From NCBI GenBank assembly GCA_015680685.1, contig MNCI01002989.1, positions 455,484-519,483 on the forward strand: DNA of 64,000 nt, in the 5' to 3' direction. This DNA is from Gnetum montanum (taxonomy: Eukaryota > Plantae > Gnetophyta). The first letter of the stretch is position 1. Every line of letters starts with the position of its first letter. A program made the translations under genes and the position numbers. Shown here in pieces: positions 1-64,000 of the stretch. Below the pieces are notes generated by a model. That model searched no databases and was not told where the DNA came from. It saw only the letters and a list, made by a program, of their open reading frames with translations.

Positions 1-1351
1 ACCTTCTACTATGCCTTGACCCCACCATGCCACCTTGAATTACTATTTTGCAACCTCTCTTTTGCTATGTCGTTCCTACCACATTCTTATTATTTCCACT
101 ACCATGACATTACAAGAAATGCTTCTTTACAGTTCATATGATCTTGACATCCCTTTGTGCTAGCTACAACTAGTGAGGTACACCTTCATAGTAACAAGCC
201 ATTAATTACATTCAAGTGGCAAAGAATAGAAATCATCATGGCCTCTAGAATCATGGGTCTTCATCATAGCCATGCTTTTAGCATAGTTAGTGTGGCTTAC
301 TACCTTACACTACCTTCGTACTACCACTTCATGCTATTTCATCCTTCCTCCAACACATGCATCATTGTCTCATGTAGCATATGTTTTCATTCATCTATCA
401 TTGCCCATGTGTCATTGCATTCTATTCTATACTCTTCATGCTCTATTGTTCTACGCTATCCTTTACAAGTGTGAACTGCACTAATTTTAGCCATGAATCA
501 TCATTTCACTCTTTAACCTTACCAATCCACTCTATATTCTACTACACACCTCTCCTTTGTTGTGATGTTTTGGTCACATCACTTACATGACAACATCATG
601 TGCTATTTCATCCTTTCTGCATTGCATTCACTGTCATCCCATACAACCTATGCCATTGTTCCTCTATTGCTCCCCATGCAATACTATTTTTTATTCCACA
701 CTCTTCAAGCCCTATCATTCTACACCATCTTGGCAAGGTGGTGCACATTACTACTATAGTAATTTTAGCTATTATTGCCTATGTGCCTTGTCCTCCAACA
801 TTGTCTTTCATATTTGGCATAATTCTTTCCACTTTTGTACATGTTGCTTTTACCAATAACTTTCCCTTTATCATTTTACTGTCATTGAAAATTCCATTTA
901 AAATTTTGGCAATCCAAAATAATAGTAGATATCATTAGCACTATAAAATTATACCTTCAATGGAGCTTTGTGGATACCACAGGTGCTATAAAATCATGTC
1001 ATGCACTAAGCTCCATGGACACTACTAGTGACATAAAATTGTACCTCGCATGGAGCTTTGAAAACACTACTAGCATAATAAAATCTTGACATCTACGAAG
1101 CTCCAATGGATACTATTGTTGCCATAAAATCATTCTTTATAGTTTAATAAACACTACTAGTGCTACCAACCTACCTCCTTGACAAGTTTGAAAACTTGAA
1201 AATTTTATATTAATTAATGGAAAAATTGAAATTTTTTCATAAATTGATGAAAATTTCATACATTTATAAAACAAGTGGTAAAAATAAAATTTGAAAATGG
1301 GGAAAAAATTTCTAAATGGAAATTTAGTGCATTGGTAGCAATTAGGATAAA

Positions 1352-1415
1352 GCTTTCATAATTAAGCATGATCATTCTAGAGTAGTAGGTGGATGGATGA
1401 CCTCTTGGAAAGTCT
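1352..1415 (+). pseudogene. 5S rRNA-derived fragment (box A-IE-box C; about nt 40-105 of 5S)
   Basis: ATTAAGCATG..AGAGTAGTAG.TGGATGGATGACCTCTTGGAAAGTC vs plant 5S GTTAAGCGTGCTTGGGCGAGAGTAGTACTAGGATGGGTGACCTCCTGGGAAGTC. Confidence 0.85.
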
Positions 1416-1539
1416 CACTTGCATGTCCATAGTTTTGGACATTGGTATCCATAACTTTTGGTGCTAGACATATTTTTTAGCAAGTGAGGAGTCATTTTCT
1501 TTAGATTTTAACCTTCCATAAATAAACTTAATTTTAACA

Positions 1540-1632
1540 AGTTAGGGTAGTGAATCGAATCCAAGACCTTCTAATTATGCTTCATATAGCTAACGTCAAC
1601 ATATTCTTCTTCATATAGCTAACCATCAATGT
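1540..1632 (-). pseudogene. tRNA-like module (internally rearranged copy)
   Basis: Minus strand AGGTCTTGGATTCGATTC; the CTTCATATAGCTAAC block is duplicated. Confidence 0.55.
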
Positions 1633-3038
1633 GAATATTTTTCTTCTTAAAAAATTAATATACGTTAATTATATTTCACTCTTTATATTAATAAATAATA
1701 TTCTATTCAAGAAATAAATTTTTTACTTTCATCCTAATCCTTACTATTAGGACCAGCTAGTCACTATGACTAGCTATGTCCCACTAGTCCTACAGCACCA
1801 TGTCAATTTTCTGTCATCTATAATATCCCCACATATTCTCCCAAGCCTTAACCATGTCATGTCATTCTAGTTACTATTTCATTAGCTCTCTTCTACTAGG
1901 TTGTTCCTGTTACACTACTTGACCTTACCACAACCATGCCATTCTAACAATCCCATTTTTGCAATCCTCATGGCCCTTTGATGATCCTCTCTTTCGTAGA
2001 ACCCTCACATCGCTCTATGCAGGTAACCACAGGTATGCTTGGCTTGGTTTCCACATTGTCACTATCGAGATGACTAGCTTGCCATAGGCACAATTGGCCT
2101 TCCCATCCTCCACAATGATAGGTCACTAATTATAGCTAAGTAGCAAATAAGAAAAATCCTTAAAACTACCACAATTGTGATCCTTTTTCATAATTGCATG
2201 TTGCACATAGTTGCAATGGCTTGCCACTTTGCACTACCTTCCCACTACCATTATGTGTTGTTTCATCCTTTCTCCACTACATGCACCATCATCTCAAGTA
2301 GCTTGTGTTACCATTCCTTTAATCCTACTTGTGTACCACTATCCTATATTTACTACTCTTCATACCTTATCATCCTTGCTACTCTTGTTACTACCCTAAA
2401 TTTGACAACACTTCCATGCATGTCCTATCCTATATTACCATTCTTTGAATTTTGTATTATCTTTTCCACTCCCATGCATGCGATTTTTACTGGAAGCTAT
2501 ACTTCTATTACCACCACCTTCATCTAAGTTGTCATAAACATTCCCACAAAAAATCTTGATAGTATAGTAATCATGAATAACATTGGCACTATATATTCCT
2601 ACCTTCTACAAAGCTCTATGGACACTACTAGTGCTAGAATATTATATCTTCTATGAAGGACCATGGATACCATCGATCCCTTAAAATCCTACCTCCCATG
2701 GAGCTCTATGGATATCTCTAGCACTATAAAGTTATACCTCCATGGAGCTCCATGACCATAATCAACATCATAAAATCCTCTCTCTCGTAGAACTCTAATG
2801 AGCATTGTTGACACCATAAACTCCTACCCTTTAAACAACTCTGACCAATACTATCAGCTTACCTTTGTTGTAGGTCTGGTAATGGAAAATTTTTTTGTTA
2901 ATCGAAGGAAAAATTTAAATTTTTTTTCAATCAATGAAAAATTCAAACATGTCAAAAACAAGCAATAAAATGAAATTTGAAAACTTGAAAGAAATATTCA
3001 AAAAGAAAATTTGGTGTGTTAGCATAAGATAGGATAAA

Positions 3039-3101
3039 AATTTTGTAATTAAGCACACTCATCCTAGGGAAGTACTATGACGGATGACCTATCACAAAGT
3101 C
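3039..3101 (+). pseudogene. 5S rRNA-derived fragment
   Basis: Degenerate copy of the unit module: TTAAGC..AGTACTA.GA.GGATGACCT..AAGTC. Confidence 0.75.
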
Positions 3102-3228
3102 TAATTTTTTATGCCTAAATTTTTAGACTATTAAAGACATAACATTTATTTTGGATGCATTTTTCAGCAAATGAATAGTCATTTTCTACAAGTCTCAACC
3201 TCATGTAATAATAAACTTAGTTTTAAAA

Positions 3229-3314
3229 ATTTTGGATTGGGAATCGAACCCTCAACCTCCTAATTATTAACCTTAACATCTTATGCTCCATATAGCTAAT
3301 CATTAAACCTAAGC
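3229..3314 (-). pseudogene. tRNA-like module (B box/T arm)
   Basis: Minus strand GGGTTCGATTCCC is a canonical B box. Confidence 0.65.
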
Positions 3315-4878
3315 TTTTTCTTCTAAAAAATATAATATACTTTAATTATATTTAACTCATTTCAATAATAAAAAAATATAATAATAAATATATTAAAAGA
3401 AAAAATTGAATTTTAGGCTTTGGCACTAATCGATAAGATTAGGGTCAGCCAACTGCTCTAGCTAGACATGAACCATTGGTCATGTGATCCCATGAAATAG
3501 ACTCATGTAGCCTTGTATTATTTCCATATCATCTGCTATTATTGACACACATTCTATAAAGCTATAGCCTCACTGTGCCACTCTAGTCATCATTGTGTTG
3601 CCTCTCTTCCATCACATCATTATTTCCACACCACTTGATCCTATCACTAGTGCATTTTTGCAAAAGTCCTTTTTTGTGATGCAAGTGGTCCTTCCACAGT
3701 CTTGACTCCCTCTTCATTATCACTTCCCTCCATATCTATCATCACTAGAAGGGCTAACCTAGTCATGGCTTAGCCACCATGTTATCACAAAGCATCATGA
3801 AAGGCCACCATTGATAAGGCTAGCTTGCCACAAGCCTCTCTTTCATCAACAAGGATGGCTTATAATGGGTCTTTCTTTATAATGCCTTTCTTTTGCTTTA
3901 CCATTACAACAAATCCTTGTTTGTGGCTCATGCAGTTCTTGCATTATCCTTGCTCCCTCACCATCCTCATGTCTCTCTATACCTACCATGACTAGTAGTG
4001 GTGGAAAGGCTAGCTTGCCACAAGCATGGTTGGCATCATGATCCTTCACCATCCTTTGTAGTAACAGACCATCAACCATGGTCATGGCCCTCCACCATAT
4101 CTACTTTTCTGACATAATCATTATGTTATTTTACCTTGTGCTATGTTTCCACTGCTGTTGTGTACTATTTTATCCTTCTTACAGTGTGTGCACCAACATC
4201 CCACATAGCTCATGCCATTATTCCTTTGCTAATACCTATGCACCACTGTCCTCTATTTGACATTTTTCATGCCTTGTATTCTTGCATCATCATTGCCAAT
4301 GGTTGCACCATACTATTGGATAAATTTTAGACATGCATACATATGCATCGTACTCTCTAGAGTCATTATTTAAGTTTAATACAATTTTTTTCATTACCAT
4401 GCATGTCATTTTTGCCATAGCCTATGCCTCCATCACTACCATATTCACCTTTATTTTCCCTAAAAATCCTAGCAAAAATTTTAGTAGTCCATGGGCATTA
4501 CAAACACCATTGGTACTATAAAATTCTACCTTACATTGATCTCTATGGATACAACTAGCATTGTAAATTCTTGTCTTTAATTGAGCTTTGTGAACACTAT
4601 TAGGGTTATAAATTCCTATGACTCATAGACCTTGAATAGACATCAATGATGCTATAAAATTCTACCTCCCATGAAGCTCTAATGGACACTTATAGCTTTC
4701 CTCTTTAGTAGCTTCAACATCTAGAAATTTTTTCATCAATTGACAGAAAAATTCAAATTTCTTCATAAATTAATGAAAATTTCAAATATGTCATAAACAT
4801 GTGGTAAAATGGAAATTTGAAAATATGGAAAAACATTTTCAAAAGAAAATTTAACACATTGATAGCAACTAGTATAAA

Positions 4879-4941
4879 AGTATTGTAATTAAGCATGCTC
4901 ATCCTACACTAGCAATAGGATGGATGATCTCTTGGGAAGTT
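4879..4941 (+). pseudogene. 5S rRNA-derived fragment
   Basis: TTAAGCATGCT..TAGGATGGATGATCTCTTGGGAAGT. Confidence 0.8.
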
Positions 4942-5079
4942 TCATTCTTAAAAAGTAAGTTTGGCACCTTGGCAATAACTTCAGTAGCCATGAATGTTCA
5001 TTTTGAATGTACTTTTTACAAAACAAAGATTCATTATCTACAAATTTCAACCTCCCATAAAAGAGCTTAATGTTAAGAA

Positions 5080-5160
5080 GTTAAGATTAGGAATTGAACC
5101 TAAGATCTCCTAATTATTAACCTCAATACTTATGCTTCATATAGCTCACCAAAAATGCCA
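5080..5160 (-). pseudogene. tRNA-like module
   Basis: Minus strand TTAATAATTAGGAGATCTTAGGTTCAATTCCTAA, with a paired T stem. Confidence 0.6.
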
Positions 5161-6403
5161 AAATTTTTCTTGTTAATAAGTTAATACAAATTACTTAAAA
5201 TTTAATTATTTTCATTAATTATAAAAAAATAACAAATATATTTAACAAAAAATATTATAGTTTTAGCTTTGGTCCTAATTTGTAGGGTTAAGGCTAATCA
5301 AATGCTAGTAATGCTACCTTATATAATAGCCCTGTGGAGTCCTATGCCATTTTCCTTTCATTTGCCACTCCTCACATGCCTTCTACTAAAGCTTAGAACC
5401 ACCATGCCACTCTAGTCCTTGTTGCTTCACCTCTCTTCTGGCATACCATTCCTTGAGCACTGCTTGATCTTGCTGCTACAATGGTATTTCAATAAAGCCA
5501 TGTTTATCACCCATGTGATCCTTGTATATCCCTTACTTCGTCAATGTTCTCACATCCCTCTATGCCCACCACTACTCATAAGGCTAGCTTGTCTAGAGCA
5601 CAGCCACTACGCTACAATGAGGCATCATAGTAGGCCACTGTTGGTAAGGTTGGCTTATCATGGGCATGGGCAGCCTCACCATCCTCCTCCATCCTCCACA
5701 ATGGAAAGTCACTAATAATGATCAAGAGGCAATAAGAAAAATACTTATGGCCATTATAGTCATGGTCAATAAACACAAATTCCTTTTCCATGCCGTCGAC
5801 ATTACCTTCTACCTTGAGCTACCTTTCTACCTCAGTTGTGTGTTATTTCATCCTTCATATACTATGTCTCCTATGTTTCCATAAAGCTCATGCCATCATT
5901 TATATATGACTACCAGTGCATCATTATTCCATATTTTGCACTCTCCAATCCCTATCATCCTATGGCATCCTTGCTAAGTACTATGCCTTGTTGCTTCACT
6001 GATTTTAATCATGTATACCTATGTGTCCTACCCTTCAACGCTGTCCTTCATATTTTACACCATTTTTTTCACTACCACACATGTTATTTATGTGACCTCC
6101 TTTTCCTTCACCAACATCAAAAACCTTAATGGGAATTTTGGCAATCCATGATGATGAAAAACACCATCAACACCATAAAATCCTACCTCACATAGAGCTT
6201 TAGTGAACACCATTAGCACCATCTACTTGACTTCCTAGCAAGTTTGGCAATGAAAAGTTTTTTTATTAATTGATGGGGAAATTCAAATTTTTTCATCAAT
6301 AAATTAAAATTTCAATGACATTAAAAATGATGGTAAAATTTAAATTTAAAATATAGAAAAATTTTAGAAAGGAAATTTGTTGGATTTGCATCAATTGGAA
6401 TAA

Positions 6404-6467
6404 AACTTCCATAATTAACTATGCTCATCCTATAGTAATACTTAGATTGGTGATCTCTCCTTAAGTC
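6404..6467 (+). pseudogene. 5S rRNA-derived fragment
   Basis: Degenerate, positionally homologous copy. Confidence 0.7.
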
Positions 6468-6594
6468 TTATTTCCTATGGTCAAAGTATTAAACTTCAAA
6501 AGCTATAACTTTTGATCTAGAACATCTTTTTCAGTAAATGAAGATTCATTTTCTATAGATTTCAACCTCTTGTAAAAACTTTTAATGCTAAAAA

Positions 6595-6672
6595 TTTAGG
6601 CATAGGAATCAAAGCAAAGACCTTCTAATTATCAACCATAACATCTTATATTTTAAATTGCTAACCACCAGG
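6595..6672 (-). pseudogene. tRNA-like module
   Basis: Degenerate homologous copy. Confidence 0.5.
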
Positions 6673-7037
6673 ATTGTTCTTGTCAATAAATTAATATACT
6701 TTACTTATATTTAACAATTCTAATTAATAAATTAATAATTAATATATTTAAAGAAAAATTTATATTTTTCTCTTTTGTCCTAACCTTAAGGTGAAGGCCA
6801 ATTAGCTATTTTGACTGGCTACATGCTGCTGGCTATGTAGCACTATGCAATAGCACCATGTTATTTTTGTATCATCTACCAATACCTAGACATCTTCTGC
6901 CAAGCCTTGGCCTTACCATGCCACACTAGTCACAGTTGCTCTATCTATATTTTACCATGTCATTCATGTTGCACAACCTGCTACTACTGATGTTGTTCCA
7001 TTGCAGTAAATCCTTGATTGTAGTTTATACCATCCTT

Positions 7038-10000
7038 TGTAGATATGGAAAATCTTGGCCATTGGAAAGCCAAGGATTCTCAACTACAAATAGCCTCAAC
7101 CCTAAATCCCCAAGGACTTTGAGAAAGAATGGGATTCAGGATGCCTTGGATGCTCTAGTGGTCACCTAAGGACTTAGGAGGGTCTAAAATGGGGTTGTAA
7201 AAAATGTAAAAAATTGTAGATTTGAAAACCAAAAATAGATACAAATTACACATAAAATGAAACTATAAATTTTATTAATTAAATAAAGAATGAGTTCATA
7301 AGTGTATACAAAGGTTCACGTAGAAGAGCAAAGGGGGGTTTACTTAGGTGGGGGTTCCAAGTTCGTTGAAGAAGATAGAATTTGCTTCATGATCTAGATG
7401 CTCAACCACTCTTGATGTTGTCAAACCTTCTCTACTATTGCTCAAGATCTACAACATGGGTCACTACTAGGATTGTGAAATGTCAAGGATTTTGTTTGTC
7501 AAAATGCTCCACACTGGAATTTGGAGATCTCAACAGGTCAATGTTGATATCCGAGACACACAAATGCCAAGGTGGGTAACATGGGTAACAAGGTTACAAT
7601 GGTTTTATGCTAGCAGGCCCCAAGAAGCTGCATTTTTGCTAGGAAGTAAGAGCTCTTGAATGTCAAAAATTCCAAATGCTTCAAATGCAAAGTGTGTGGA
7701 ATTGCCAAGAATGTGAAACCTTGAAATGGTGTTGGGTTTTAATTTTATAGGGGTTTGGCCATGATTTGGGCTACAAATTGGTTTGGCCATTAGAGTATTA
7801 TTAATGTTGTACCAAGAATACTCTAGCATCTTCCTCATGTTCAGAAGATAACATGCACCAATGGTGTCATTTGTTTCCACTGGCTCTCCTACTATTCCAG
7901 TCTCTAGATCATTGGTTATGAATCAAGTAACCAACTATGCATAGCCTAGCAGTAGGGTCTCCACTATGACCTTGGCTACCTCGACAAGTATGATCACATC
8001 ATCATACTAAAGTTCTAAAGAGATAGGCAAGGAATTTCCTTGCCCCTAAATGAAACCATAGTAACCCCTTCTCTAGGTTCATGTTAGGAAGAGGGATGTT
8101 GGCCTTAGGCTAGCTGATACAACATAAGATGACCACTAGCTCAACCATGATGAGAACGAGATTTAGCATGACCTTGCAAGGGGAAGACATAAGCATCATT
8201 AGTATCATGTTTAAATGCTTAGAATTTCCTTATGAATTTCATAAAACCTCGTAGTTAAGGATGAAATTAGCCCCTATAAAAACTATAAAGTGTTTGTCAA
8301 AATTTGTTTAGAGATTCGACAACTAGTTTACAACCTTCTTAGCCATTAAAAATTTATAGCCAAGACATCATAGCCAAAATTATGCCTTAGTCCAAACCAC
8401 ACATTAATTTAGAAAAAGCTCTAAAACCTAGAAGAAAATAGCCATAGGAAAAAGATTACTAAAAATAGCAAAAATCTCTATTTCTCATGAAACCAACTTT
8501 AGAACATAGTTTACATCTTTAGGTATTCCAAGGAGTAGGGAAGTTGGCAAGAGAAATCTCTAAGTATGTTAATAACATCCACCTCCAAAGGGTAAATTGC
8601 TACAACTAGAATTAAGCCTAATTAACACAACCATAGTCAAATACTCATAAAATATTTTTCAAAGCTCTAATTTTAGTGATTCCACATTGAAAGGATCATG
8701 AAATCACAAGAATTGGAATCATAGCTAGTAGAAATAGAAAAAAATGACCAATTTTAGATGAACCATAGCCAAATTTGCACAACTATAGCTATCAACATAA
8801 ACCCCATTTCATGTAGGGTTGGTAAAAAATTCACCAAAAATTCTTTTAAGTTCCAAATGGGGTGATTTCACTATCATTTGAAAGTTAAATCAAGCCCTAT
8901 GAACCAAAAATTAACAAAAATTTAAATCCTTTACCTTTTATTCACAAAAAGTTCACAAACTTGGATGAAAATATGAAAAATGGCACAAACTCTAATTACA
9001 CAACCTACTTGAAATAGACATAACTTCATTGTTATGAATCCAATTTATATGAGACCACAAAAAATGTAAAGATTAAACATAATCTTAAATACCCATAACA
9101 TTATATTTTTCCACCATTTAGCCCTTTTTTTAGTGAAAAATCCACAACATTGCTTGATATTTTCATTAAAAAAGCATTTAAAAACCCAAAATTCTTACAA
9201 CCTAAGTTAATTTAGCCATGAATTGAAGTTTAAAAATCCAAAAAATCTTAAACCCACAAAAAAAAACATCAAAATAGGGGATAGGATTTTGTTAGAATTT
9301 AATTTTAGCAAATATATCAGCTTAGATCTAACAAAAACATCTTCACTCAATTTTTTTAGAATAAAAACACACAAAAAACAAGCCTATTTCAAAAGTCAAA
9401 TTTGCCAAAGCTTGAATAGCCAAACAACCTTAGATCCATGTAGAAATAGCCAAACTATGAGGTAGGATTTTTTTCAAAATTCAATGTCATCAAGTCCTTT
9501 TGAGTAGATTTGAAGAAAATGACCTTTTCCTAACTAAAAAGCACAATACAGTTGGGAAACTAGAGAAAGTAGCAAAGAATGACATACCTTGGAGTCAGCA
9601 AGGAGGATGCCTAAATGGTAAGTAGCCTAAGTAGTTGGAAGATGTTCTTAGCTACTTCAATAGTGGCATACATCCTTGGGTTTTTGTTGCTAACTCCATG
9701 ATTCTTCATCATTTTTGTACTAGCATTCAGGAAACTAAAACCTCTATGCTACCTAGGAGAAAGATCTAGTGCTTCCACACTAAGGATTGATGGTGGTTAA
9801 TAGTTGGAATCTCTACTAGAGCTGTAGGAAGTGTGCTATGGTGGAGAATGATAATTTGTGCCTAAAACTTAGTAAAATCAACAATAAAAATTAAACTTAA
9901 ACCCAAATGTTTCCACTCTAAACCCTATTGCCATTTTTGTGGATTAGAACTCAAAGTGCACTAAAGTGCAAGGGGGAAAAGTATTTCCTATGTTATATGG

Positions 10001-49936: not shown

Positions 49937-49940
<4 letters not shown>

Positions 49941-49974: not shown

Positions 49975-49981
<7 letters not shown>

Positions 49982-50029
49982 AAAGTATAACAATGTTGTA
50001 AAAGAAAAACAACAGAATTTAAAGAAATT

Positions 50030-50145: not shown

Positions 50146-50501
50146 TAAGAAGAACTGAGGGCCCCAAATGATTAGCATAGGTGGCCATCTACCCTATGAC
50201 TGAATGAAAAGGGAGAGATCTGAAATAATGAATGTCTAGTTGAATTTCTTAAAAGTGTCCAACTTCTCCCAACTGATGTTCTTAGATTAAGGGGTGAAAG
50301 TTGGCGATATTCATATTCCAAGGTATTTATGCTTTCATTATGGGCATGAGTTATTCCCCCAATTCATTCCATGCATGTTGGTTTGCTCTTTCGACTAGCT
50401 GTCAACCGTGGGGTGCCTTCTTATTGAGTGGTTGCTACATACAGACACCTTTGAATGTTATCCTCTGGTGCACACCAGTTACATGCAGGAGATGTTAAAT
50501 T

Positions 50502-53651: not shown

Positions 53652-53669
53652 TCCCCGACAATGGTGCCA
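53652..53669 (-). promoter_or_regulatory. Primer binding site complementary to the tRNA-Asp 3' end
   Basis: Minus strand TGGCACCATTGTCGGGGA vs Athila-type TGGCGCCGTTGCCGGGGA (three transitions), 1 nt from the LTR. Confidence 0.88.
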
Positions 53670-53670
53670 A

Positions 53671-54444
53671 TGATGAGTGGCGAGGTACCCCTACACTCAA
53701 CCATACAAATACGAGTGTAACACGCACGATCCAGTCGAACTCCATACACTAAGTGCCTACACGCCTCATGGAACACTTAAGGTTAATTATTCGTTATCTT
53801 CCCAGACTTATAGTTGTCACGGTGTATGGTTAAGTAAGTCTAAGGTATATGATTTTTATGTCTTTTCAGTTTTATCTCCTATGCTGATAAGGTGAAGGGT
53901 GAAGAGACTAATTACTAACTTCAACTAACTAACTAAGTCTTAATTAACCTAGCGTCAACATCTATTCCCAGTTACTGTTCACACCCTGAACCAATGCAAC
54001 CTTGGTTACCAAACGCTAATCGTTGATGGGATCACCAAGCGTAACGCATGTGCTCGAAGTGGTTGTACTGAGGCACTTAACTAGGAGAGAAGGGTTGAGA
54101 GAGAATTAATTACTAATAAAGCATTTAAATAATAAATAATAAATAACAGTAAATAAAATCCTATTTAGCCTATTCCATGCACTGCAAGGTTTATCCAAGA
54201 AGTTTGTCTTTATTGTCGTACACAAACATGTGTTCAAGTACAATATTTGCTCGAATAAAGATCCATTCACTTTGGAGCTCCTACTGCGAGCACATGGAAA
54301 ATATTCTATCTCTGGAGAGGTAAAACTACCAGAGTTTTGCTAAGGGTCTAGATCTAGATGAGAAACAAAGGGAGAGCCACCTCTTATTTATAGACTTGGC
54401 AGCATACCGCGATATCGCAGCGGACGTGATATCGTGTCCCATCA
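53671..54444 (-). repeat. 5' LTR (774 bp)
   Basis: Direct repeat of 47388-48195; differences are mostly transitions plus a ~30-bp indel in the GATATC repeats. Confidence 0.95.
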
Positions 54445-54475
54445 GTATTGGAATGGATGATCTTTAAAGAAAACT
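54445..54475 (+). pseudogene. 3' part (box C) of the split 5S-derived fragment
   Basis: GTATTGGAATGGATGATCTT directly after the LTR end CATCA. Confidence 0.8.
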
Positions 54476-54602
54476 TGTTTTTCATGCCCAAAGTTTTAGA
54501 CTTCATAGAGCATAAATTTTAATTCTATATGCCTTTTTTTGACAACCAAAGATTCATTTTCTACACATTTTAACCTTTCATAAAAATACATAGAGTCTAT
54601 GA

Positions 54603-54687
54603 TTTGGGACTAAGAATCAAACCCAAGAATTTTTAATTATTAACCTCAATATCTTATGCTTCATATAGCTAACCACCAAAGACAAGC
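54603..54687 (-). pseudogene. tRNA-like module
   Basis: Homologous copy. Confidence 0.55.
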
Positions 54688-56030
54688 TTTTTCATACTAA
54701 ATAATTAAAATAATTTAATTATATTGAATAAATTTTATTAAAAAAATAAGAAATATATTTAAAGAAAATTAAATTTTGGGTTGTGGCCCTTATCATTATA
54801 GTTTGGGTAGAATAACCACTTTTACTAGTTATGCACCACTAGCATTGTATCCTCATGAAAGAGCCCTATGTTATTTCCATGTCATCTATGAATTCCTACA
54901 TGTCCTTTGTCAAGCCTTAGCCTTACCATGTCACTCTAATTGCTCTTGTGCTACATCTTCTCTACCACATCATTCCTGTTGCATCACTTGAACTTGTGGT
55001 TGCAGCAAATCCTTATTTGTTGCTCATGTAGTTCTTTCATTATCCTCATTCCATGACTGTTCTCACATTTCTTTGTGTCTATCACTACTAGTAGGACTGG
55101 CATAATTACAATGTGGTTGTTGCACTACCATGAGTCATCATGGCAAGCCCCCACCAACAATGTTATCTTACAGCAGGCATGGTCACCCTTGCTATTTTCT
55201 ACAATCCATCATTGTAAAAGACCACCAATTTTGGCCAAGTTGCAATAAGAGAAATCCTCATAGCTACCATAGTCATGGCCCTCTACCATAGGCATAGTTC
55301 TTGCATAGCCAGTGTAACTTATTGCCTTGTGCTACATTCTTGCTATTACTATGTGTTGTGTTATCCTTCCTTCATTGCATGCACCATAGTTTCATGTAGT
55401 CTATTCCATTACTCCTCTACCATTTTCCATGCATAGCAATTCTTTGTTCTACACTCTTCATGCCCTATCATCCTTTTCCTTCTTTCCTAGGTGTCATGTC
55501 TTGCTACTCCATTAACTTAGACCATGCCTACCTATGTTTCTTATTCTTTATTATATTGCTCCATGTTTTACTACATTTTCTTTGCTGCCATGAATACCAT
55601 CACCACCACCACCTACACCTCCATCATTTCCACCTTTACCTTGACCATCATAAAAAAGTCACTAAAAATTTCAGTAGTCCATGATGATCATACAAAACAT
55701 CTGCACCATAAAATCATACCTACCATGAAGCTTCGTAGACACTGCTAGCATTGTAAAATCTTGCCTCCTAAGGATTTCCTTAGGTACAATCAATGCCATA
55801 AAATATTATTTGCCATGATTGTTTAATGTACACCACTATCTTCATCAGCCTTCCACCTCGAAAAGTTCAAAAATGGGAAAGTTTTCTATCAATTAATAGA
55901 AAAATTCAAATAATTTCATTAATTTAATAATGTTTCAAATCCTTCATAACAAGCAGTAGAATTTAAACTTGAAAATTTGGAGAAATTATTTTTTAAAAAA
56001 ATCTGATGTGTTATTAGCAACTAGGATAAA

Positions 56031-56093
56031 AATTTCATAATTAAGCATGCTCATCCTAGAGTAGTATTAGGATGGCTAACCTCTTGGGAAGTT
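56031..56093 (+). pseudogene. 5S rRNA-derived fragment
   Basis: TTAAGCATGCTCATCCTAGAGTAGTATTAGGATGGCTAACCTCTTGGGAAGT. Confidence 0.88.
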
Positions 56094-56219
56094 TGGTTTA
56101 CCATGCCAATAGTTTTACACTTTCAAAATCATAACTTTTTATTCTTGATGTCTTTCTTGGCAAACAAAGATTCATTTTCTACAAATTTCAAATTCTTGTA
56201 AAAAATATAATGTTAAAAA

Positions 56220-56303
56220 GTTGAAGCTAGAAATCAAGCTTAAGGCCTCTTGATTATTAACCTTAACATCTTATGCTTCATACAGCTAAACATAAAAACC
56301 AAG
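56220..56303 (-). pseudogene. tRNA-like module
   Basis: Degenerate homologous copy. Confidence 0.5.
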
Positions 56304-57609
56304 TTGTTTTATTAAATAATTAATATAATAAAATTATATTTAACACTTTTCATTAGTAAAAATAATAATCATAAATATATTTCAAGAGAAAAATAAATTT
56401 TGAGCTTTGGCCCTAACACCTAAGGATGGAGCTAGCCAGTTGTTGTGTCTATCTACACACACCACTAGCCATGTAACCCCATGAAATAGTCTTGTGATAT
56501 TTCCATTTCATCTACTACTACTTGCATTCATTCTACCAAGCCTTGGTCCCACTATGTTATTGCAATCACCTCTACATCACCTCTCTTCTACTACATCATT
56601 CCTGTTGCACTCGTTAATCCAATCTCTATCACACCATTGCAACCAACCTTCTTTTGTGGCCTATGCCATCCTCCCATGGTAATTTCTCCCTCAATACCTT
56701 CATGTCCTCCTACAACTATGATCATTGGTAAGCCCAACCTAGATTTAGCACAACCATTACATTGTCGCAAGCCACTTTCAAGAGGGATTACTTGCCATAG
56801 GAATGGTAAGCCATGCCATCCTCCACCATCCTTCGTAGTGACAAACCACTAATTATGCCTAAGAGATAACAAGAAAAACCCTCATGGCTACTATAGTTGT
56901 AGCCTTCCATTGTAGCTACATATCCTGCATAGCAAGTATTACATATCATATTACACTACCTTCCTACTACCACTATGCCCATCCTCAACCACATGTGCCA
57001 TATTTCCATGTAGCACCTACTATTATTCATCTATTACTACATGTGCATTATTATCCTCTATTTTTTTCTCTTCATGCCTTATCATCCTATTCTATCCTTG
57101 CCAAGTGATGTGCCCTATAATTGTGTTTATTTTGGTCATGCCTCTTTGAGCATCTTGCTCTCTAGCATCACCCTCCATGTTTTGCATCATCCTTTCCATT
57201 GATGCACATGTTTTATTCACCACTTGCTATGCCTCCATCACCACTGTCTTCAAGTTCATTATTATTGAAAACCCCATCAAAAGTTTCGGTAGTTGATGTT
57301 GATTACATATAATATTGGAATAATAAAATCCTACTTCCTATCAAGCTCTATAAACATTGCCAATATCATAAAATCATAACTTCAATGGATCTCCAATGAT
57401 CACCACTAACATTGTAAAATCCTACCTTCCATGAAGGTTTGATGAATACCACTAGCCTACCTCCTTTGTGGGTTCAGTAATGGGAAAATTTTCTATTAAT
57501 CAACAGAAATTTAAAACACATCAAAGAAAATCCCATAAATTTTAAATTTGAAAGTGGAGGAAAAATTTTCAAAAATGAAATTAGATGCATTAGCTAAAAC
57601 TAGGATAAA

Positions 57610-57672
57610 AATTCAATAATTAACCATGTTCATCCTCAAGTGGTACTAGGATGGATGATTATTTGGGAAGTC
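57610..57672 (+). pseudogene. 5S rRNA-derived fragment
   Basis: GTACTAGGATGGATGA..TGGGAAGTC. Confidence 0.8.
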
Positions 57673-57799
57673 TTGTTTTCTATGCCCAAAGTTTTAGAGT
57701 TTGATAATGATAACTTTTGATTTTGGACACTTTTTTAGCAAATTAAGATTTGTTTTCTATAAATTTCAATGTCCTATAAAAGAAACTTAATGTTAAAAA

Positions 57800-57884
57800 G
57801 TTCAAACTTGGAATCAAACCTAAGATCTCATAATTATTAACCTCAACATCTTATGCTTCATATAGCTAAGTACTAAAGACAAGC
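57800..57884 (-). pseudogene. tRNA-like module
   Basis: GGAATCAAACCTAAGATCTC. Confidence 0.55.
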
Positions 57885-59315
57885 TTTTACTTATCAAAAA
57901 GTTAATGTACTTTATTTATATTTAAAAATTTTCATTAATAAAATAATAATAATAATATTTAAAGAATAAAAATTAATTTTTAGGGTTTAGCCCTATCCCT
58001 TTGGATTAGGGCTATCTAATCACTATGGCTAACTATGCACCACCGCTAGCCATGTAGCCTCATGATGTTGATCTATCATCTATTATTGGATGCATCTCAT
58101 CTACCAAGTCTTGCCTCATTGTATTATTCTATGTTATTTGCTACTCTCCACACGCCTTCTACCAAGCCTTGGCCCTACCATGGCACTCTAGTCACCACTA
58201 CATTGTTTATCTTTTACCACATCATTCCTGCGACACCACATGACCTTGCTGTTTCCATGCTATTGTAACCAACCCTTGATTTTAGCCAACATGGACCTTT
58301 CATAGCACTCACTTCCTCATGGCTCTTATATTCCTCTACATCTACCACTTCTAGCAAGGCTAGCCTAGCTATGGCACAACCACTACACTGCAATAAGGCA
58401 TCACAACAAGTTGTTACCAATAGGGCAAGCTTGTTGTGGGTATTGTTGAACTTGCCATTATTTGTAGTGGTAGGCCATCAATTGCATCCAAGATGTAATA
58501 AGAGAAATGCTCATGGCCACCATAACCATGACCCTTATTTGTAGCCATCTTTCCCATGCAACTGATGTGGCTTGTTGCTTGGTCCTACCTTTTCACTATC
58601 GCTTTGTGCTATTTCACACTTCTTCCACTACACATGTCATCAGCCCTTACACCCCCTACCATCATTCCTCTACTATTATTCATGAACTACTTATTTATTC
58701 TATGTTATTCATGACCTATCATCTTGGATCATACTTACCAGGTGTCACACCCTACTACTACATAAATTTTAGCTACACCTTTGTGCATGCAGTATCCTCC
58801 AATGCCATTCTTTGCATTTTGTGCCATTGTTTCCAATGCTACACATGTTATTTTTGCCACTCCCTATGTCTCAGTCACGATTTCCTTCATTTGCACTATA
58901 GCAAAAAATCCCACTGCAAATTTAAAAGTCCACAATAATCCTAAATAGCATCGACACTATAAAATCCTACATTCCAAGGAACTACGTAGACATTGTCAAC
59001 AACATAAAAGCCTACCTCCCATGAAGCTTTGTAGATACCACTAGTGCTATAAAATCCTACCTTTCATAGAGCTTCATAGATACTCCTAACATTGTAAAAT
59101 CCTACCTTTCATGAAGGTCATACGGATACTACCAATGCCATGAAATCCTACCTCCTAGAATGCTTTGATGGACATTGTGAATATCACTAGCCTACCTTTT
59201 GTTAATCAATTGAAAATTCAAACATATCAAGAAAAAGCATTAAATTTTAAATTGAAAACACATAAAGGAAAGTTTTAAAAAGGAAATTTGAAATGTTGGT
59301 AGCAACTATGATAAA

Positions 59316-59377
59316 AATTTCACAATTAAGCATGACATCTTGGAGTACTATTAGGATGGATGATCTCTTTGGAAGTA
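59316..59377 (+). pseudogene. 5S rRNA-derived fragment
   Basis: TTAAGCATG..TAGGATGGATGATCTCTTTGGAAGT. Confidence 0.78.
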
Positions 59378-59502
59378 TCATTTTTCATGCATAAAGTTTT
59401 AAACTTTGAAAGACATAGCTTTTAATTTCAACATATTTTTCAACAAAGAAGAGTCATTTACTATGGATTTCAATCTCCCATAAAAAGACATTATGTTAAA
59501 AT

Positions 59503-59585
59503 GTTTGGATTATGAATTAAACCCAACAACTCCTATTTACTAACCTCAACATTTTATGCTTCATATAGAAAATTACCAAATCTAA
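59503..59585 (-). pseudogene. tRNA-like module
   Basis: Degenerate homologous copy. Confidence 0.45.
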
Positions 59586-60883
59586 TATTTTGCTTGTAAA
59601 AAATTAATATACTTTAATTATATTTAAATCATTTTATTAAAAATAAAATAATTTCAATATATTTAAAGAAAAAATTAAATTTTGATTTTTTCCCTTAATC
59701 CTTATGGTTAGGGCTACCCAACCTTTGTGGCCATCTATGCATTGATGGTCATGCTACATCATGTAATAGCCTTATGCTAAATCCACATCAACAGTTTTAG
59801 ATTGCATGCCTTCTACTAAGACTTGAACCTAGCATGCCATTATGTTCATAAATGCACCATCTAACTTCTACCTTCCTATTTTTACCACATTGGTTAATCC
59901 CACTACTATTGCATCATTACAACCAATCCCTTTCATGGCATTTGCTCCCTCATCAGCATTACTTTTCTCTATGCCTACTACCATTTACAAGGGTACCTTG
60001 GCTATAGCATGACCATCACTCAATTACAAGGCATCATAGAAGGCCACCACTGGAAAGCTTTTCTTACTGCATGCATCACTAGACTTGTTGTTCTTCACTA
60101 TTCTCTATAGCAGTAGGTAATCGATTGTGGCCAAGAAGTAATAAGAGAAACCTTCATGGCTTCTAATGTTATGGAGCTCCACTATAGTTCTACTTCTTCC
60201 ATAGTTAACATGACATGTCACCTTGTGCTATCTTTCTATCACTACTACATAATGTTTCATCCATCCTTCACTATTCATATCATTATCTAATTTAGCTCAT
60301 GTTATCATTCATCTGCCACTACCTAGGCACCACTAGTCTTTGTTTCATGCTCTTCATTCCCTATCATCATGTGTTGTCTTTACTAGGTAATGCACCCTAC
60401 TACTACACTATTTTGGCCATGTTTTCCTTAACAACCTATCCCCTAGAATTATATTTTTTGTTTTGCATCCTTTAATCTACTGTTGCGCATGCTATTTTTT
60501 CATCAACTATGCCTCCATCACCAACACCTTTACCTCCTTCATTATTGAAGATCCTATTGGAAATTTTGGTAGTGCATTGCTACAATCAATACTATCAACA
60601 TGGTAAACTTCTATCTACCATAGAGTTAGATAGTACTGATGACATAAAATCTTAACTTCTATAAAGCTCATATGGACACCACTAGTGCTATCAAATTATA
60701 CCTTCCATGGAGCTTCACCAGATACTACTAGCCTTCCTTCTTAATAGTTTCAACAATGGAAAAATTTGTTGTCAATCAATAGAACTTTTAAACACATCCA
60801 AAATAAGTAGTAAAATATAAATTCAAAAAGTGCAGAAAATTTTCAAAAAGGAAATTTGGCACATTGACAGCAACTAGGCTAAA

Positions 60884-60946
60884 AATTCTAGAATTAAACA
60901 CTCTCATCTTGCCCTAGTAGTGGGATGGGTGACTTGTTAGGAAGTC
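60884..60946 (+). pseudogene. 5S rRNA-derived fragment
   Basis: Retains exact box C GGATGGGTGAC. Confidence 0.78.
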
Positions 60947-61073
60947 TTGTTTTTTGTTCCTAAAGTTTTAAACTTTGGAAATCATAAGTTTTAATTTTGG
61001 ATGCCTTCTTTTGAAAAACTAAGAGTTTTTTTCTTTAGATTTCAACTTCCATAAAAAATACTTAATGTTAAAA

Positions 61074-61159
61074 AGTTGGTACCAGGAATCAATCCTAAGA
61101 TGTTCTAATTATGAACATCAACATCTTATGCTTCATATAGTTAATCAATACAGTCAAGC
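61074..61159 (-). pseudogene. tRNA-like module
   Basis: Homologous copy. Confidence 0.5.
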
Positions 61160-62540
61160 TTTTGCTTATTAAAAAAAGAATGTAATTTAATTTTATTAAC
61201 TTTTTTCATTAATAATAATAATAATAATATATTTAAAAAAACAAATTAAATTTTTATCTTTGGCAATAATGCTTAATGTTAGGGCTGTGTAGCACCATGC
61301 AATAGTCACATGCCATTTTTGTATCATTTGTTACCATTCACATGCCTTTCACTAGACCTCAACCTCACTATGTCACTTGACTCTTTGGTACATCATCTCT
61401 CCTCTATTGCACCATTCCTACTACACCACCTGAACCTACTGCCACCATGCCATTGCAACATATCCTTTTTTGTTATACACATGCTCCTTTCATGATCCTT
61501 TCTCCCTCACCATCCTCATGTTCCTTTATGCCTACTGCCACTAGTAAGGTTGGCTTGGCTATAGCATGGCCACTATTCTATCGCAAGGCATTGTGGCAAG
61601 TCACCGATGTCAGAGTAAGGTTACTACAAGAAAGATCAACCTCTTCATTTTCTACCATCCTTCATAGTGGAAGACAATTAACTACTTTTAAGAGGCAACA
61701 AGAGGAACCCTCATGATAGCCATAGTGTGGTCATAGTGTGGTCCTTCACTGCAGCTATAGTTCTCGTGCAATTGGCAAGACTTATTATCTTGCACTACCT
61801 TCTTGTTGTTACTAAAGGCTATTTTACTCTTCCTCCACATGTGTCCCATGCCATTGTTCCTATACCAATGCTTATGCATAATTATCCTTTGTTCTATGCT
61901 CTTCATGCCCTATCATCCTACTACTATGCTAATTTTGGTGATATGCACCTACATTTTCTATCATCTAGTGCTATCATCCATTTTTTATGCCATTTTTTCC
62001 ACTACCGTGAATGCAATTTTTGCCACCATCTACACCTCCATCATTGTTGCCTTCACCTCTATTGTTGTTTAAAATCCCATCTAAAATTTCAATAATCCAT
62101 GATGACTATGGATACCATTATCATCATAAAATCCTACCTCAAATGAAGCTCTACAAATACCATTGATGTTGTAAAATCCAACCTCCCATGGAGTTCTATG
62201 GACATGCCAGCAGTATCAAATGCTACCCTCACAGAGCTCTATGGATATCGTTTATATCATAAAATCCTACCTTTCATGAAACTCTAATGCACACTATCAA
62301 CAACATAAAATCTTGACCTCCACCAAGCTTTGATAGATAGCACTAGCATCACTGGCCTACAACCTTGGCAACTTTAGCAATGAGAAGCTTTTCTATCAAT
62401 TACTAGAAAAAATCAAAAAAAATTTGTCAATCAATGAAAATTTCAAGCACATCAAAATTAGGCAATAAAATTTCAACTTGAAAACATGAATAATAAATTT
62501 TAAAAGGAAAATTTGATGCCATGGTAGTAACTGGAATAAG

Positions 62541-62603
62541 AATTCCATAATTAAGTGCATTCATCTTGAAGTATTACTAGGATGAATGACATTTTGGAAA
62601 GTC
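62541..62603 (+). pseudogene. 5S rRNA-derived fragment
   Basis: TACTAGGATGAATGAC..TGGAAAGTC. Confidence 0.78.
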
Positions 62604-62730
62604 TAGATTCTCATATGTAAAGTTTTAAACATCAAAGCCATAACTTTTGATATTGGATGTCTTTGTTGGTAAAAAAAGAGACATTTTCTATAAATGTCAA
62701 CATCTTATTAAAAAATTTTAATGTTAAAAA

Positions 62731-62815
62731 GCTAGGGTTGGAAATCGAACCTAAGATCTCCTAATTATTAGCCTCATCATGTTATTCTTCACATAACTAA
62801 TCACTTGATCTAGGC
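62731..62815 (-). pseudogene. tRNA-like module
   Basis: Minus strand TAGGTTCGATTTCCAACCCTAGC followed by TTTTT. Confidence 0.6.
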
Positions 62816-64000
62816 TTTTTCGTGCAAAATAATTAATATATATTAATTATATTTAACTCTATTCATTAATAAAAATAACTATAATAAATATATTTAAAGA
62901 AAAAAATTTTAAATTTTACACTTTTTTCCTAACCCTTAGGGTGAAGGACAACTAGTCGTTTTGGCTATCTACATGTTCATGGTTGTGCAACCCCATGCAA
63001 TAGCCTTGTGTCATTTTCGTGTCAGCTACTATCACCTGCATGTCTTTTGCTAAGATTTTTTTCTACTATTTTATAGTAGTCATCTCTTCTTTTCTCTCTT
63101 CCCTTCCATCATTCTTGCTACATAGTTTAACCCTATCACTACTATGTCATTACAACCAATCCTTGTTTGTAGCCCATGTAGCTATTTAATGGTAATTGAC
63201 CCCTTAACTCCCTCATATCCTTTGTGATTGTCATTGTTGGTAGGGTTGGTGTGGCTGCAACATGATCATCTCTCTACTATAAGACATCATGGTAGCCATC
63301 TCCAATAGGGCTGGTTTGCTACAAGCATGACCAAAATCGTTGTCCTCCACTATCCTTAGCAATGACATGTCACCAATTTTAGCCAAGAAAAAATAAGAGA
63401 AATCCTCATAACTGTTGTAGTTATGATCCTCTATTATAGCTACGCTTCCTCTGTAGCCACCGTGACTATCAACTTGCACTACCGATAATTCCTGCTGGTA
63501 TGCACTATTTCACTCATCCTCAATGGTCCATGTCATCATCCCATGCAACTTGTGCCATCATTCCTATACTAATAGCCATGTGTTACTATTCTCTATTTCA
63601 TGCTCTTCATGCCATGTCATGCTACGCTCTCATTGCTAGGAAATGCATCCTACTATTTGCACTAATTTTACCTGGTAATGCTTATGCATCTTACCCTCCA
63701 TCATCATCCTCTATATTTTGCACCATTTTTTTCATTGCCATGCATGTTATATTTTCCATAGACTATTATTATCCAAAATCCCTGAAGAAATTTTAATAGC
63801 CCAAGGTGACTATAGATACCATTACCATCGTAAAGTTCTACTTCCCATAAAGCTCTAAGAACGTTGTCATTTATGTAAGGTCCTATCTTCCATGGAGCTC
63901 TGATCGAGCCATCGGCACTTACTACCTTCCATTGAGCTATAACAAATAACACCTACTTGCCTTCTTGGTAGGATTAGCAATAGGAAATATTTTCAGAAAA

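Follow-up and report, generated by a model that had tools for sequence, protein, structure and literature searches.

A probable relic macrosatellite carrying 5S-derived and tRNA-like modules in Gnetum montanum

The stretch of Gnetum montanum DNA analysed here (the window, positions 1-64000) holds about 20 units or pieces of units arranged head-to-tail, with a period of 1.55-1.73 kb in profile searches. The unit profile placed this order on the + strand (nhmmer), and self-BLAST of the window returned 163 direct against 12 inverted self-matches. The tandem array is genuine and far beyond chance. Module profiles found 18 5S-like modules on the + strand and 18 tRNA-like modules on the - strand, the latter invariably downstream of the former and with the internal order fixed, as the original prediction of 18 head-to-tail units had it. 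TRF overlooked the macro-period only because its longest period was set to 500. The array extends past both ends of the window and is broken by three blocks, which are retroelements or without recognised identity.

The first array block (1-7038, +), defined with nhmmer unit and module profiles and by direct reading of the sequence, contains a partial, rearranged unit at 2-1138, units starting at approximately 1198, 2889 and 4727, and lastly a truncated unit spanning 6258-7038. Its 5S-like modules lie at 1320-1437, 3007-3125, 4847-4957 and 6373-6489 (+), and its tRNA-like modules at 1529-1649, 3218-3326, 5068-5176 and 6583-6685 (-). The second block (25882-33363, +; unit and module profiles) begins at 25882 with a partial unit and continues with a unit at 27491-28383, the single inverted unit fragment at 28405-29110 and units from about 29196 and 30828; a truncated unit (32528-33363) closes it. 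Here the 5S-like modules are at 27607-27723, 29284-29397, 30947-31065 and 32648-32764 (+), with an extra, doubtful match at 25831-25951; the tRNA-like modules are at 26045-26171, 27755-27862, 31157-31265 and 32858-32965 (-), and the module profile search found none in the unit at 29196.

The third block (40530-47387, +; unit and module profiles) opens with a rearranged unit at 40530-42302. Units starting at about 42341 (partial), 43894 and 45601 follow, and the block closes with the left portion of a split unit (47224-47387). It carries 5S-like modules at 40650-40768, 42339-42443, 44013-44128 and 45719-45837, plus a left half at 47318-47387 (+), and tRNA-like modules at 40859-40966, 42535-42643, 44221-44329 and 45929-46038 (-). 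The 5S-like module at 42339-42443 contains the 23-nt palindromic core as an exact copy. The fourth block (54446-64000, +; unit and module profiles, with reads and contigs on 55877-60748) starts with the right portion of the split unit (54446-55847), followed by units from about 55880, 57469, 59197, 60750 and 62388, the last continuing to the window end. Its 5S-like modules are the right half at 54446-54498 and those at 55999-56117, 57578-57696, 59284-59401, 60852-60970 and 62509-62627 (+); its tRNA-like modules are at 54591-54699, 56208-56311, 57788-57896, 59492-59599, 61063-61171 and 62719-62827 (-).

The interruptions are not parts of the unit. The 7,058-bp LTR retrotransposon at 47388-54445 (-) is inserted inside a 5S-like module, which it splits at 47387/54446. 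Its LTRs (about 47388-48162 and 53671-54445) differ by a K2P distance of 0.093, its 5-bp target duplication has decayed (GCACT / GTATT), a PBS-like TGGCACCATTGTCGGGG adjoins the 5' LTR, and a gag ORF lies at 51609-52643. The 18.8-kb block at 7039-25881 is decayed retroelement or transposon sequence with an RVT_1 ORF (13906-14394), a Transposase_32-like ORF (19047-19565) and LTR-like pieces at 21767-22518 related to the 47-54 kb element; after it, the array restarts out of phase. An N gap (18298-18308), after which come about 19 consecutive G, lies inside this block and outside all units, and the array findings are independent of continuity across it. In the 7.2-kb block at 33364-40529 no domain was recognised; the array restarts after it at a unit start, so that about 800 bp of the preceding unit are missing.

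Among the remaining unit parts, the palindromic 45-bp array that had been predicted is real (TRF) and stands at the 3' end of each unit, for example at 45335-45498 (+), 27268-27415 and 30562-30673; a pattern search for the palindrome CCATGGAGCTCCATGG, to which its core is close, allowed up to 3 mismatches and gave 12 matches where 0.17 were expected. The predicted inverted repeats were found in the AT-rich head of the unit, as in the hairpin at 43893-43948 (+), whose 27-nt arms are 81% complementary. The telomere-like palindrome is present at the level of the consensus (CCCTAA..TTAGGG, beyond the AT-rich stretch following the tRNA-like module), but an exact copy, CCCTAATCCTTAGGG, exists in one unit only (41060-41074, +).

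The module on the + strand is derived from 5S rRNA. The majority consensus of the 5S-like part, essentially the string given in the original prediction, is identical to the organism's own 5S at 54 of 68 nt without gaps, and the alignment scores 80 against 15.4 +/- 2.5 for shuffles (shuffle maximum 35), a significant similarity on the consensus. Genuine 5S rRNA reads cross-map on a 37-nt core with 4 fixed differences, and their loose ends read full 5S rRNA; the proposed 5S homology is thus real. AATTAAGC occurs in box A of both the 5S rRNA reads and the units, which indicates the lineage's own 5S as the source. The module retains no more than roughly the 3' two-thirds of 5S; to the first ~40 nt the consensus shows no significant similarity. 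Boxes A and C are 18 nt apart, and a palindrome takes the place of the intermediate element. Being common to all units, such derived features were present in the founder. In the best-scoring module (55999-56117, +; module profile, Rfam and reads), a box A-like AATTAAGCATGC and a box C-like AGGATGGCTAACC flank an 18-nt spacer with the palindrome CATCCTAG..CTAGGATG, TTTT lies downstream, and true 5S rRNA reads cross-map on 56056-56092. Its match to Rfam 5S_rRNA (17.0 bits, E 0.58) falls under the gathering score of 38, as do the Rfam 5S scores generally (13.8-17 bits), and boxes A and C each with at most one mismatch are kept in only 3 of the 18 units.

A 5S-bearing array of this kind could also be a non-autonomous LTR retroelement of the Cassandra/TRIMp3 type that became tandemised; the period would then equal one LTR (with the 5S segment) plus one internal domain. 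This is the main rival reading, although we consider it unlikely, together with the origin by LTR-LTR unequal recombination that it would share with Cassandra. Plants are known to contain long tandem arrays of Cassandra TRIMs in which the LTR forms the unit and the internal domain the spacer (Kalendar et al. 2020, PMC7215508); like the Gnetum array, they resemble a 5S rDNA array without being one and carry a 5S-derived segment with boxes A and C 18 nt apart and a T-run. Purine-rich runs upstream of the 5S-like part, the TGG-starting stretch TGGTAGCAAC at its 5' edge and the high copy number of the module family in four species point the same way. However, the Gnetum array has neither a tRNA-iMet PBS nor definable LTR ends: the PBS TGGTATCAGAGC occurs in no unit at up to 2 mismatches, in keeping with the absence of a Cassandra PBS noted originally, and no TG..CA boundaries or adjoining PPT can be defined. 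The stretch complementary to a tRNA cannot serve as PBS because it ends in an A run (T on the tRNA strand) and not in TGG. Furthermore, the unit is twice the size of Cassandra, its period of ~1.6 kb comparing with 565-860 bp for whole elements (<0.9 kb; PMC10886601), and it carries a convergent tRNA-like module; the units are ~40% diverged whereas those of Cassandra arrays are nearly identical, and reviews record no Cassandra from gymnosperms (PMC10946416). The TRIMp3 elements Helenus (tRNA-derived LTR) and Ajax (LTR derived from part of 5S) likewise keep a non-coding, promoter-bearing part of a small-RNA gene, only part of 5S in the case of Ajax (Kojima 2024, PMC10886601), but they have two LTRs, PBS, PPT and target duplications within 0.3-1.3 kb and one small-RNA type, while none of those defining ends is seen in the Gnetum array, which combines two types convergently.

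The tRNA likeness of the - strand module is weaker than the 5S homology. Its consensus holds a significant T-arm/B box followed by a T-run (the former in 3 of 20,000 shuffles, both together in none of 20,000), and to this extent the predicted tRNA-type promoter stands; the A box, on the other hand, is poor, with 3 mismatches even in the consensus, and no tRNA was called by Rfam or default ARAGORN. The B box has at most one mismatch in 7 of the 18 units and is exact in two, and no unit ends the module in TGG/CCA. The best-kept copy (3218-3326, -; direct reading, Rfam and box search) combines an exact B box/T-loop GGGTTCGATTCCC with a D-arm-like TAGCTATATGGAGCA; TTTTT follows 11 nt past the B box, and there is no CCA. 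In Rfam, its match is confined to the 13-nt T-loop and is to tmRNA, a member of the tRNA clan.

With two gene-like modules, each with its own T-run terminator and AT-rich flanks, the array might instead be what remains of a true Pol III gene cluster or rDNA spacer that later died. In the first case, an ancient tandem array would once have encoded a 5S variant together with a tRNA; in the second, part of a 35S-5S linked intergenic spacer containing a 5S pseudogene and subrepeats would have been amplified. Taken jointly, these variants seem distinctly improbable. With relaxed settings, ARAGORN returns a 74-nt Ile(AAT)-like cloverleaf for the consensus, but only at a threshold that 3.8% of shuffles pass. 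The rDNA spacer of the gymnosperm Ephedra contains 5'-deleted 5S pseudogenes with conserved terminators, adjoined by short subrepeats (Garcia and Kovarik 2013, PMC3692318); those pseudogenes, however, lie between 26S and 18S, whereas the Gnetum window has no 18S, 5.8S or 26S and does carry a tRNA-like module. The founder 5S was moreover already defective, given the 5' loss and the intermediate element replaced in all units, and the Rfam scores are low, as described above.

Pairwise identity between units is 56-66% without neighbour effect, and the unit tree is a star, with a mean terminal branch of 0.355 against a mean internal branch of 0.021, which argues for one old burst with no later homogenisation. 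Between-unit K2P is ~0.57, compared with 0.093 for the LTR pair of the element inserted in a unit; the claim of an ancient, non-homogenised ~1.65 kb array is therefore supported. CpG is depleted to 0.12 of its expected frequency, with TG and CA overrepresented and a Ts/Tv ratio of ~2.5. The units have decayed independently under mutation of the cytosine-methylation type and have been invaded by retrotransposons.

The original prediction had further suggested Pol III transcription or a chromatin boundary function, that is, paired modules still recruiting TFIIIA/TFIIIC as a Pol III unit or boundary/insulator array. The fixed module order, the exact B box in two units and the somewhat better conservation of the stretch from the 5S-like module through the AT-rich part after the tRNA-like module, relative to the body, would be consistent with this idea, yet we regard it as highly improbable. 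The conservation excess peaks in the AT-rich flank and not in the boxes, extends to the spacer (spacer and flank being conserved as well as the modules, or better), and probably reflects base composition and alignment quality. Most boxes are mutated, the module stems show no covariation across units, and a retrotransposon sits inside one 5S-like module. RNA reads and species contigs were compared over 55877-60748 only. There, module-bearing pieces of related-species contigs differ by 4.4% and 3.6% against 3.4-9.3% elsewhere and evolve no more slowly between species than the rest, and a sample of ~2% of one run, from a library type that captures short Pol III RNAs poorly, yielded no locus-specific RNA; the reads on the module are the cross-mapping 5S rRNA. 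The array appears now to act as neutral, methylated DNA, with no indication of an active Pol III system.

We consider it probable that the locus is a neutral relic macrosatellite seeded by a segment with 5S-derived and tRNA-like pseudogenes, and the window is best read as part of the interior of a dead macrosatellite that spans 64 kb or more. Mechanistically, unequal exchange or a rolling-circle-type process would have multiplied a founder segment of ~1.6 kb into head-to-tail copies during a single old burst. This founder would already have carried a 5S-rRNA-derived pseudogene (about the 3' two-thirds of 5S, boxes A and C 18 nt apart, a T-run), with the complement of box C in place of the intermediate element forming an 8-bp palindrome, and, ~110 bp further on, a convergent tRNA-gene-like pseudogene ending in a T-run and not in CCA. 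The rest would have comprised the AT-rich hairpin region, a C-rich, G-poor body of ~900 bp and the short array of 45-bp palindromic subrepeats. Both Pol III-like modules may have bound TFIIIA/TFIIIC in the founder and would now be inherited relics that are no longer maintained. The predicted composite element that captured both promoters before amplifying is possible, but a founder that merely held two Pol III pseudogenes fits equally.

In DNA contigs of four species the 5S-like module recurs in numerous further copies whose flanks resemble those of the unit, and module depth is 4717 against a baseline of ~10, so that the module family is genome-wide. This fits many arrays and equally a dispersed element; the unit is known here from one locus and may elsewhere be a mobile element with defined ends. 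Satellites derived from 5S rDNA, such as frog PcP190 (PMC11675491, PMC4201667), also take part of their unit from the transcribed 5S region, but they are animal, ~190 bp long and homogenised, whereas the Gnetum unit is a 1.6-kb plant composite without concerted evolution. Chimeric SINEs of the SINE3/AmnSINE1 group (PMC10946416) similarly combine 5S- and tRNA-derived sequence, on one strand, in a single Pol III transcript and with a LINE-type tail; in Gnetum no tail or target duplication is seen, and the two parts are convergent, each immediately followed by its own T-run.

The window was compared with itself by BLAST, which returned 163 direct and only 12 inverted matches, at 70-76% identity over 500-900 bp and with offsets that are multiples of ~1.6 kb. 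Searches with nhmmer, using one unit as the seed and then the resulting profile, resolved about 20 units or pieces of units, which follow one another head-to-tail on the + strand every 1.55-1.73 kb. Both ends of the window lie inside units, so the array must be longer than 64 kb. The repeat parts have a GC content of 0.32-0.36, with a strong excess of C over G on the + strand. TRF was run with a maximum period of 500, at which the macro-period is invisible; at lower score it reported the 45-bp subrepeats and a 30-bp AT-rich repeat at the unit heads. Profiles of the two modules found 18 5S-like modules (one of them split, with one extra match that is doubtful) and 18 tRNA-like modules, whose order and orientation relative to the 5S-like module are constant. 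The repeat array of the original prediction is thus confirmed by self-BLAST, unit profiles and module profiles, and its consensus string for the 5S part agrees with ours. The 45-bp subrepeats with their palindromic core and the inverted repeats that it described, including the hairpins at the unit heads, are present as well, as is, at the consensus level, the telomere-like palindrome.

The array is interrupted by three blocks (7039-25881, 33364-40529 and 47388-54445), on which the module profiles gave no credible match (best E 0.69). An inverted unit fragment at 28405-29110, covering unit positions ~537-1218 and flanked by two + units, represents a local inversion. The unit at 40530-42341 is rearranged into overlapping pieces of unit positions 3-985, 619-1237 and 892-1028, and the following unit begins only at unit position 137; both features point to duplications and deletions at this place in the array. 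The units contain no conserved ORF and no Pfam domain. Their coding potential was considered and rejected: the ORFs that do occur are due to the G-poor composition, are not homologous between units and lack any Pfam match. With its ~20 units and pieces in a single orientation, the array is built from a head-to-tail, non-coding unit above ~1 kb, as in a satellite. It is probably a very old macrosatellite that escaped homogenisation, whose founder carried a 5S-derived pseudogene and a convergent probable tRNA pseudogene, and which is now neutral, methylated-looking DNA. In kind, it is akin to 5S-derived repeats and to macrosatellites seeded by retroelements or pseudogenes.

No 5S match was obtained with the Rfam 5S_rRNA model over the whole window, either at the gathering score or at E <=10, and the two best single units reached 13.8 and 17.0 bits against RF00001, for a gathering score of 38. 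A same-species RNA run placed 80 reads on 56040-56202, 74 of them less than 90% alike and with four fixed differences in the 37-nt core of the module. Their overhanging ends supply the remainder of a 5S rRNA, with GGATCCCATCAGAACTCCG on the upstream side and CCTGGTGTTGCACCC on the downstream side; these reads are genuine 5S rRNA cross-mapping on the module. Pieces taken from the overhanging reads served as the organism's own 5S for comparison. Against them, the module consensus aligns without gaps at 54 of 68 nt with a score of 80, compared with 15.4 +/- 2.5 and a maximum of 35 for shuffles, so that the predicted 5S similarity proves significant on the consensus. The similarity spans about the 3' two-thirds of the gene, the first ~40 nt of 5S being unrecognisable in the module.

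Box A and box C of the consensus each differ by one mismatch from the published Cassandra/5S patterns and lie exactly 18 nt apart, a spacing kept in 11 of 18 units, and the combined box A-18 nt-box C pattern has four matches at <=3 mismatches where 0.02 are expected. The box A mismatch of the module, AATTAAGC, is also present in the organism's own 5S reads, and this common change suggests that the module derives from the 5S of its own lineage. In the overhanging reads on 56038-56110, box A of the organism's 5S rRNA seems to read TAATTAAGCGCGC, unlike the published Cassandra/5S pattern RGTTAAG. Some of the 5S reads on this interval extend beyond the T-run and enter the spacer. An intermediate form, with a unit-like ATAATTAAGCATGC followed by a true-5S-like CTTGGG, occurs in some DNA contigs of one related species (run X9). 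The region of the intermediate element is replaced in all units by CATCCTAG, which complements the start of box C; the founder therefore had an 8-bp palindrome around AGTAGTA. Selection does not maintain this palindrome, in which 6.06 of 8 pairs are kept on average, compared with 6.11 when the partners are shuffled.

An origin of the array as a dead cluster of Pol III genes, or as a derivative of an rDNA spacer, is distinctly unlikely. The 5'-deleted 5S pseudogenes with subrepeats of gymnosperm rDNA spacers (PMC3692318) are relatives in kind. Features of a functional 5S rDNA array are lacking, given the absence of a full-length 5S at gathering score, a similarity confined to 68 nt and units only 56-66% identical. 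PcP190 and other 5S-derived satellites are likewise relatives in kind, as are the TRIMp3 elements Helenus and Ajax, the latter retaining, like the array unit, only part of the 5S.

The module on the minus strand reads, in consensus, as a D-arm-like TAGCTATATGAAGCA, ~30 nt, TTGGG-TTTGATT-CCTAG, ~7 nt and TTTTT, where the central motif is a B box with one CpG-type change within a 5-bp stem. In a test designed post hoc, shuffling the unit consensus 20,000 times produced a B box in a perfect 5-bp T-stem in three cases, and in none together with a T-run. At default settings, ARAGORN called a tRNA neither in the window nor on the consensus, and Rfam gave no tRNA match over the whole window at the gathering score or at E <=10. 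Relaxed ARAGORN (ps80) folded the consensus into a 74-nt Ile(AAT)-like cloverleaf with 6/7 of the acceptor stem, at a threshold that 38 of 1000 shuffles also pass. On single units, Rfam matched only the 13-nt T-loop of this module, and its weak snoRNA, miRNA and FopS matches are read as chance. The A box carries three mismatches even in the consensus and lies 48 nt from the B box, compared with ~44 nt in a standard tRNA by our own count. Of the predicted tRNA-type module, then, the T-arm and B box stand well beyond shuffles, and the A box is poor.

In 12 of 18 units, a T-run of 4-6 residues lies 11-12 nt past the B box; a Pol III transcript would therefore end directly past the tRNA-like part. 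We also considered whether the tRNA-complementary stretch could be an extended primer-binding site (PBS) or a product of primer read-through. On the + strand, the position facing the primer CCA holds TGG in no unit and is occupied by a run of A; the stretch is therefore neither a PBS nor a reverse-transcribed primer. This makes a tRNA gene copied at the DNA level, together with its terminator, the better explanation, and a tRNA-gene origin of the module is likely. Covariation in the T-stem is at the level of shuffled partners (3.71 and 3.68 pairs, respectively). Downstream of the tRNA-like head, a SINE body with a LINE-type tail and target duplications was not found, and chimeric 5S + tRNA SINEs differ in having both parts on one strand and in one transcript.

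The closest known system is the Cassandra TRIM with its long tandem arrays, with which the array has in common the tandem arrangement and the 18-nt spacing of box A and box C (PMC7215508). The main rival explanation is a non-autonomous LTR element that became tandemised. In Cassandra, the PBS TGGTATCAGAGC lies 8 to ~173 bp downstream of the 5S part, and it is found in no unit; at <=2 mismatches it has four matches in the window, for 4.84 expected, all of them outside the units. TG..CA ends of LTRs, a polypurine tract (PPT) and 5-bp target duplications have no definable boundaries within the continuous array, and the period of ~1.6 kb is about twice the length of whole Cassandra elements (565-860 bp; PMC10886601). 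Since the defining PBS is absent, LTR ends and PPT are undefinable, the period is doubled and the units are heterogeneous, the array was not classed as Cassandra, and its origin from an LTR element seems to us rather unlikely. At the 5' edge of the 5S-like part, TGGTAGCAAC matches no tRNA 3' end known to us.

Pairwise identity among 14 near-complete units is 56-66%, and adjacent units are no closer than distant ones. Their maximum-likelihood tree is a star, with a mean terminal branch of 0.355 and a mean internal branch of 0.021 substitutions per site, and the mean K2P distance between units is 0.57. Neither the star tree nor the lack of neighbour similarity is what concerted evolution leaves; together they indicate a single amplification burst followed by independent decay without homogenisation. 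CpG is reduced to 0.12 of expectation, TG and CA are in excess, and Ts/Tv is ~2.5 in the C-rich body, which is the signature of long-term cytosine methylation. The locus is also present in DNA runs of related species, whose long contigs differ from it by 1.4% in one species (over 1810 nt) and by ~4-5% in another, so that individual units are orthologous across species. Contig joints with short sides (20-44 nt) are read as paralogous units rather than as polymorphism in unit number. If the array is such a relic, it offers a dated example of a non-homogenised macrosatellite surviving in a large plant genome, with units that gained ~0.3 substitutions per site since the burst and a locus common to several related species.

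The array had been suggested to function in Pol III transcription or as a chromatin boundary, and the maintenance of its modules was therefore assessed. T-runs are retained in 12 of 18 units on each side, 5S-like and tRNA-like. Compared with the C-rich body, the region that begins with the 5S-like part and includes the AT-rich stretch past the tRNA-like part shows somewhat higher per-base conservation. Within it, the spacer is as conserved as the 5S-like module, and conservation peaks in the AT-rich flank, which we read as an effect of composition and alignment quality rather than as constraint on the boxes. Most boxes are mutated, those within one mismatch being found in 3 of 18 units for box A, 3 of 18 for box C and 7 of 18 for the B box. 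Module-bearing contig pieces diverge normally between species (4.4% and 3.6%, with other pieces at 3.4-9.3%). No RNA specific to the locus was seen in ~2% of one RNA run, in which short Pol III RNAs are poorly captured. With covariation missing from both modules, present function of this kind is highly improbable.

In contigs from three related species, depth over the C-rich body stays at baseline (~8-25 in the deepest run). It rises to 60-900 in the bins of the AT-rich part, the 5S flank and the tRNA-like part, and to 4717 in the 5S-core bin; matches were filtered at 85% and units are ~40% diverged, a filter that would retain the AT-rich and 5S parts alone, as these decay more slowly. Most of the 5S-core depth has true-5S letters and hence belongs to 5S rDNA. 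Dozens of contigs nevertheless run on, to either side, into sequence resembling the unit consensus (TTTGGTGCATTGGTAGCAA on the upstream side, CTTAATTTTCATGCCAAA on the downstream side), indicating that the module family is multi-copy genome-wide. These depth data are equally compatible with many such arrays and with a dispersed element. It is conceivable, if improbable, that the convergent 5S/tRNA pair is the core of an undescribed repeat family derived from small-RNA genes, spread genome-wide as macrosatellite and in or near LTR elements, either as a gymnosperm-type counterpart of Cassandra/TRIMp3 or as a boundary module that binds Pol III factors. Such a family would belong to a plant group, the gymnosperms, for which reviews list no report of Cassandra (PMC10946416; bioRxiv 10.1101/2023.07.14.548913), and the finding would gain weight if whole-genome data showed the pair to be mobile or factor-binding. 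The array also shows that 5S-derived repeat families are not confined to the Cassandra lineages described so far. In practice, such modules make 5S copies look more numerous than they are and, as in this case, collect 5S reads by cross-mapping.

The interrupting block at 47388-54445 is an LTR retrotransposon of 7,058 bp on the minus strand, with LTRs of ~775 bp (K2P 0.093), a 344-aa gag ORF and a 5-bp target duplication that has decayed from the consensus GTACT to GCACT / GTATT. Its PBS-like TGGCACCATTGTCGGGG resembles the tRNA-Asp-type PBS of Athila/Tat elements, with two CpG decays. The element separates box A from box C in the 5S-like module that it entered; being a single insertion, it is uninformative on targeting of Pol III sites. 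It does show how 5S-like segments can come to lie within or beside LTR elements merely through retrotransposon insertion into a unit. The burst of the array is about six times older than this insertion.

The 7.2-kb block at 33364-40529 has no repeat elsewhere in the window, and its sole ORF of at least 90 aa (37784-38329, minus strand) lacks a Pfam match. A snoRNA-like match to sn2429 at 39504-39580 (28.4 bits, E 0.13) is probably due to chance. The 18.8-kb block at 7039-25881 consists of decayed retroelement or transposon sequence, in which one ORF (13906-14394) matches RVT_1 and another (19047-19565) is Transposase_32-like. It also contains an assembly gap (18298-18308, 11 N) followed by ~19 G up to 18327. 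The gap touches no unit, none of the conclusions depends on continuity across it, and it resembles a homopolymer that is difficult to sequence, or an artefact of assembly, within the decayed retroelement block. A 15/43-bp tandem repeat, with a unit of about AAATGTGTAAAACAA on one strand, occurs in opposite orientation at 16609-16734 and 50025-50144. Similarity also links 13205-13363 with 50537-50693, and 21767-22518 with the LTR of the element at 47388-54445. The shared tandem repeat and these pairs suggest that the 7-26 kb and 47-54 kb blocks hold related elements, two in all, that are oppositely oriented.
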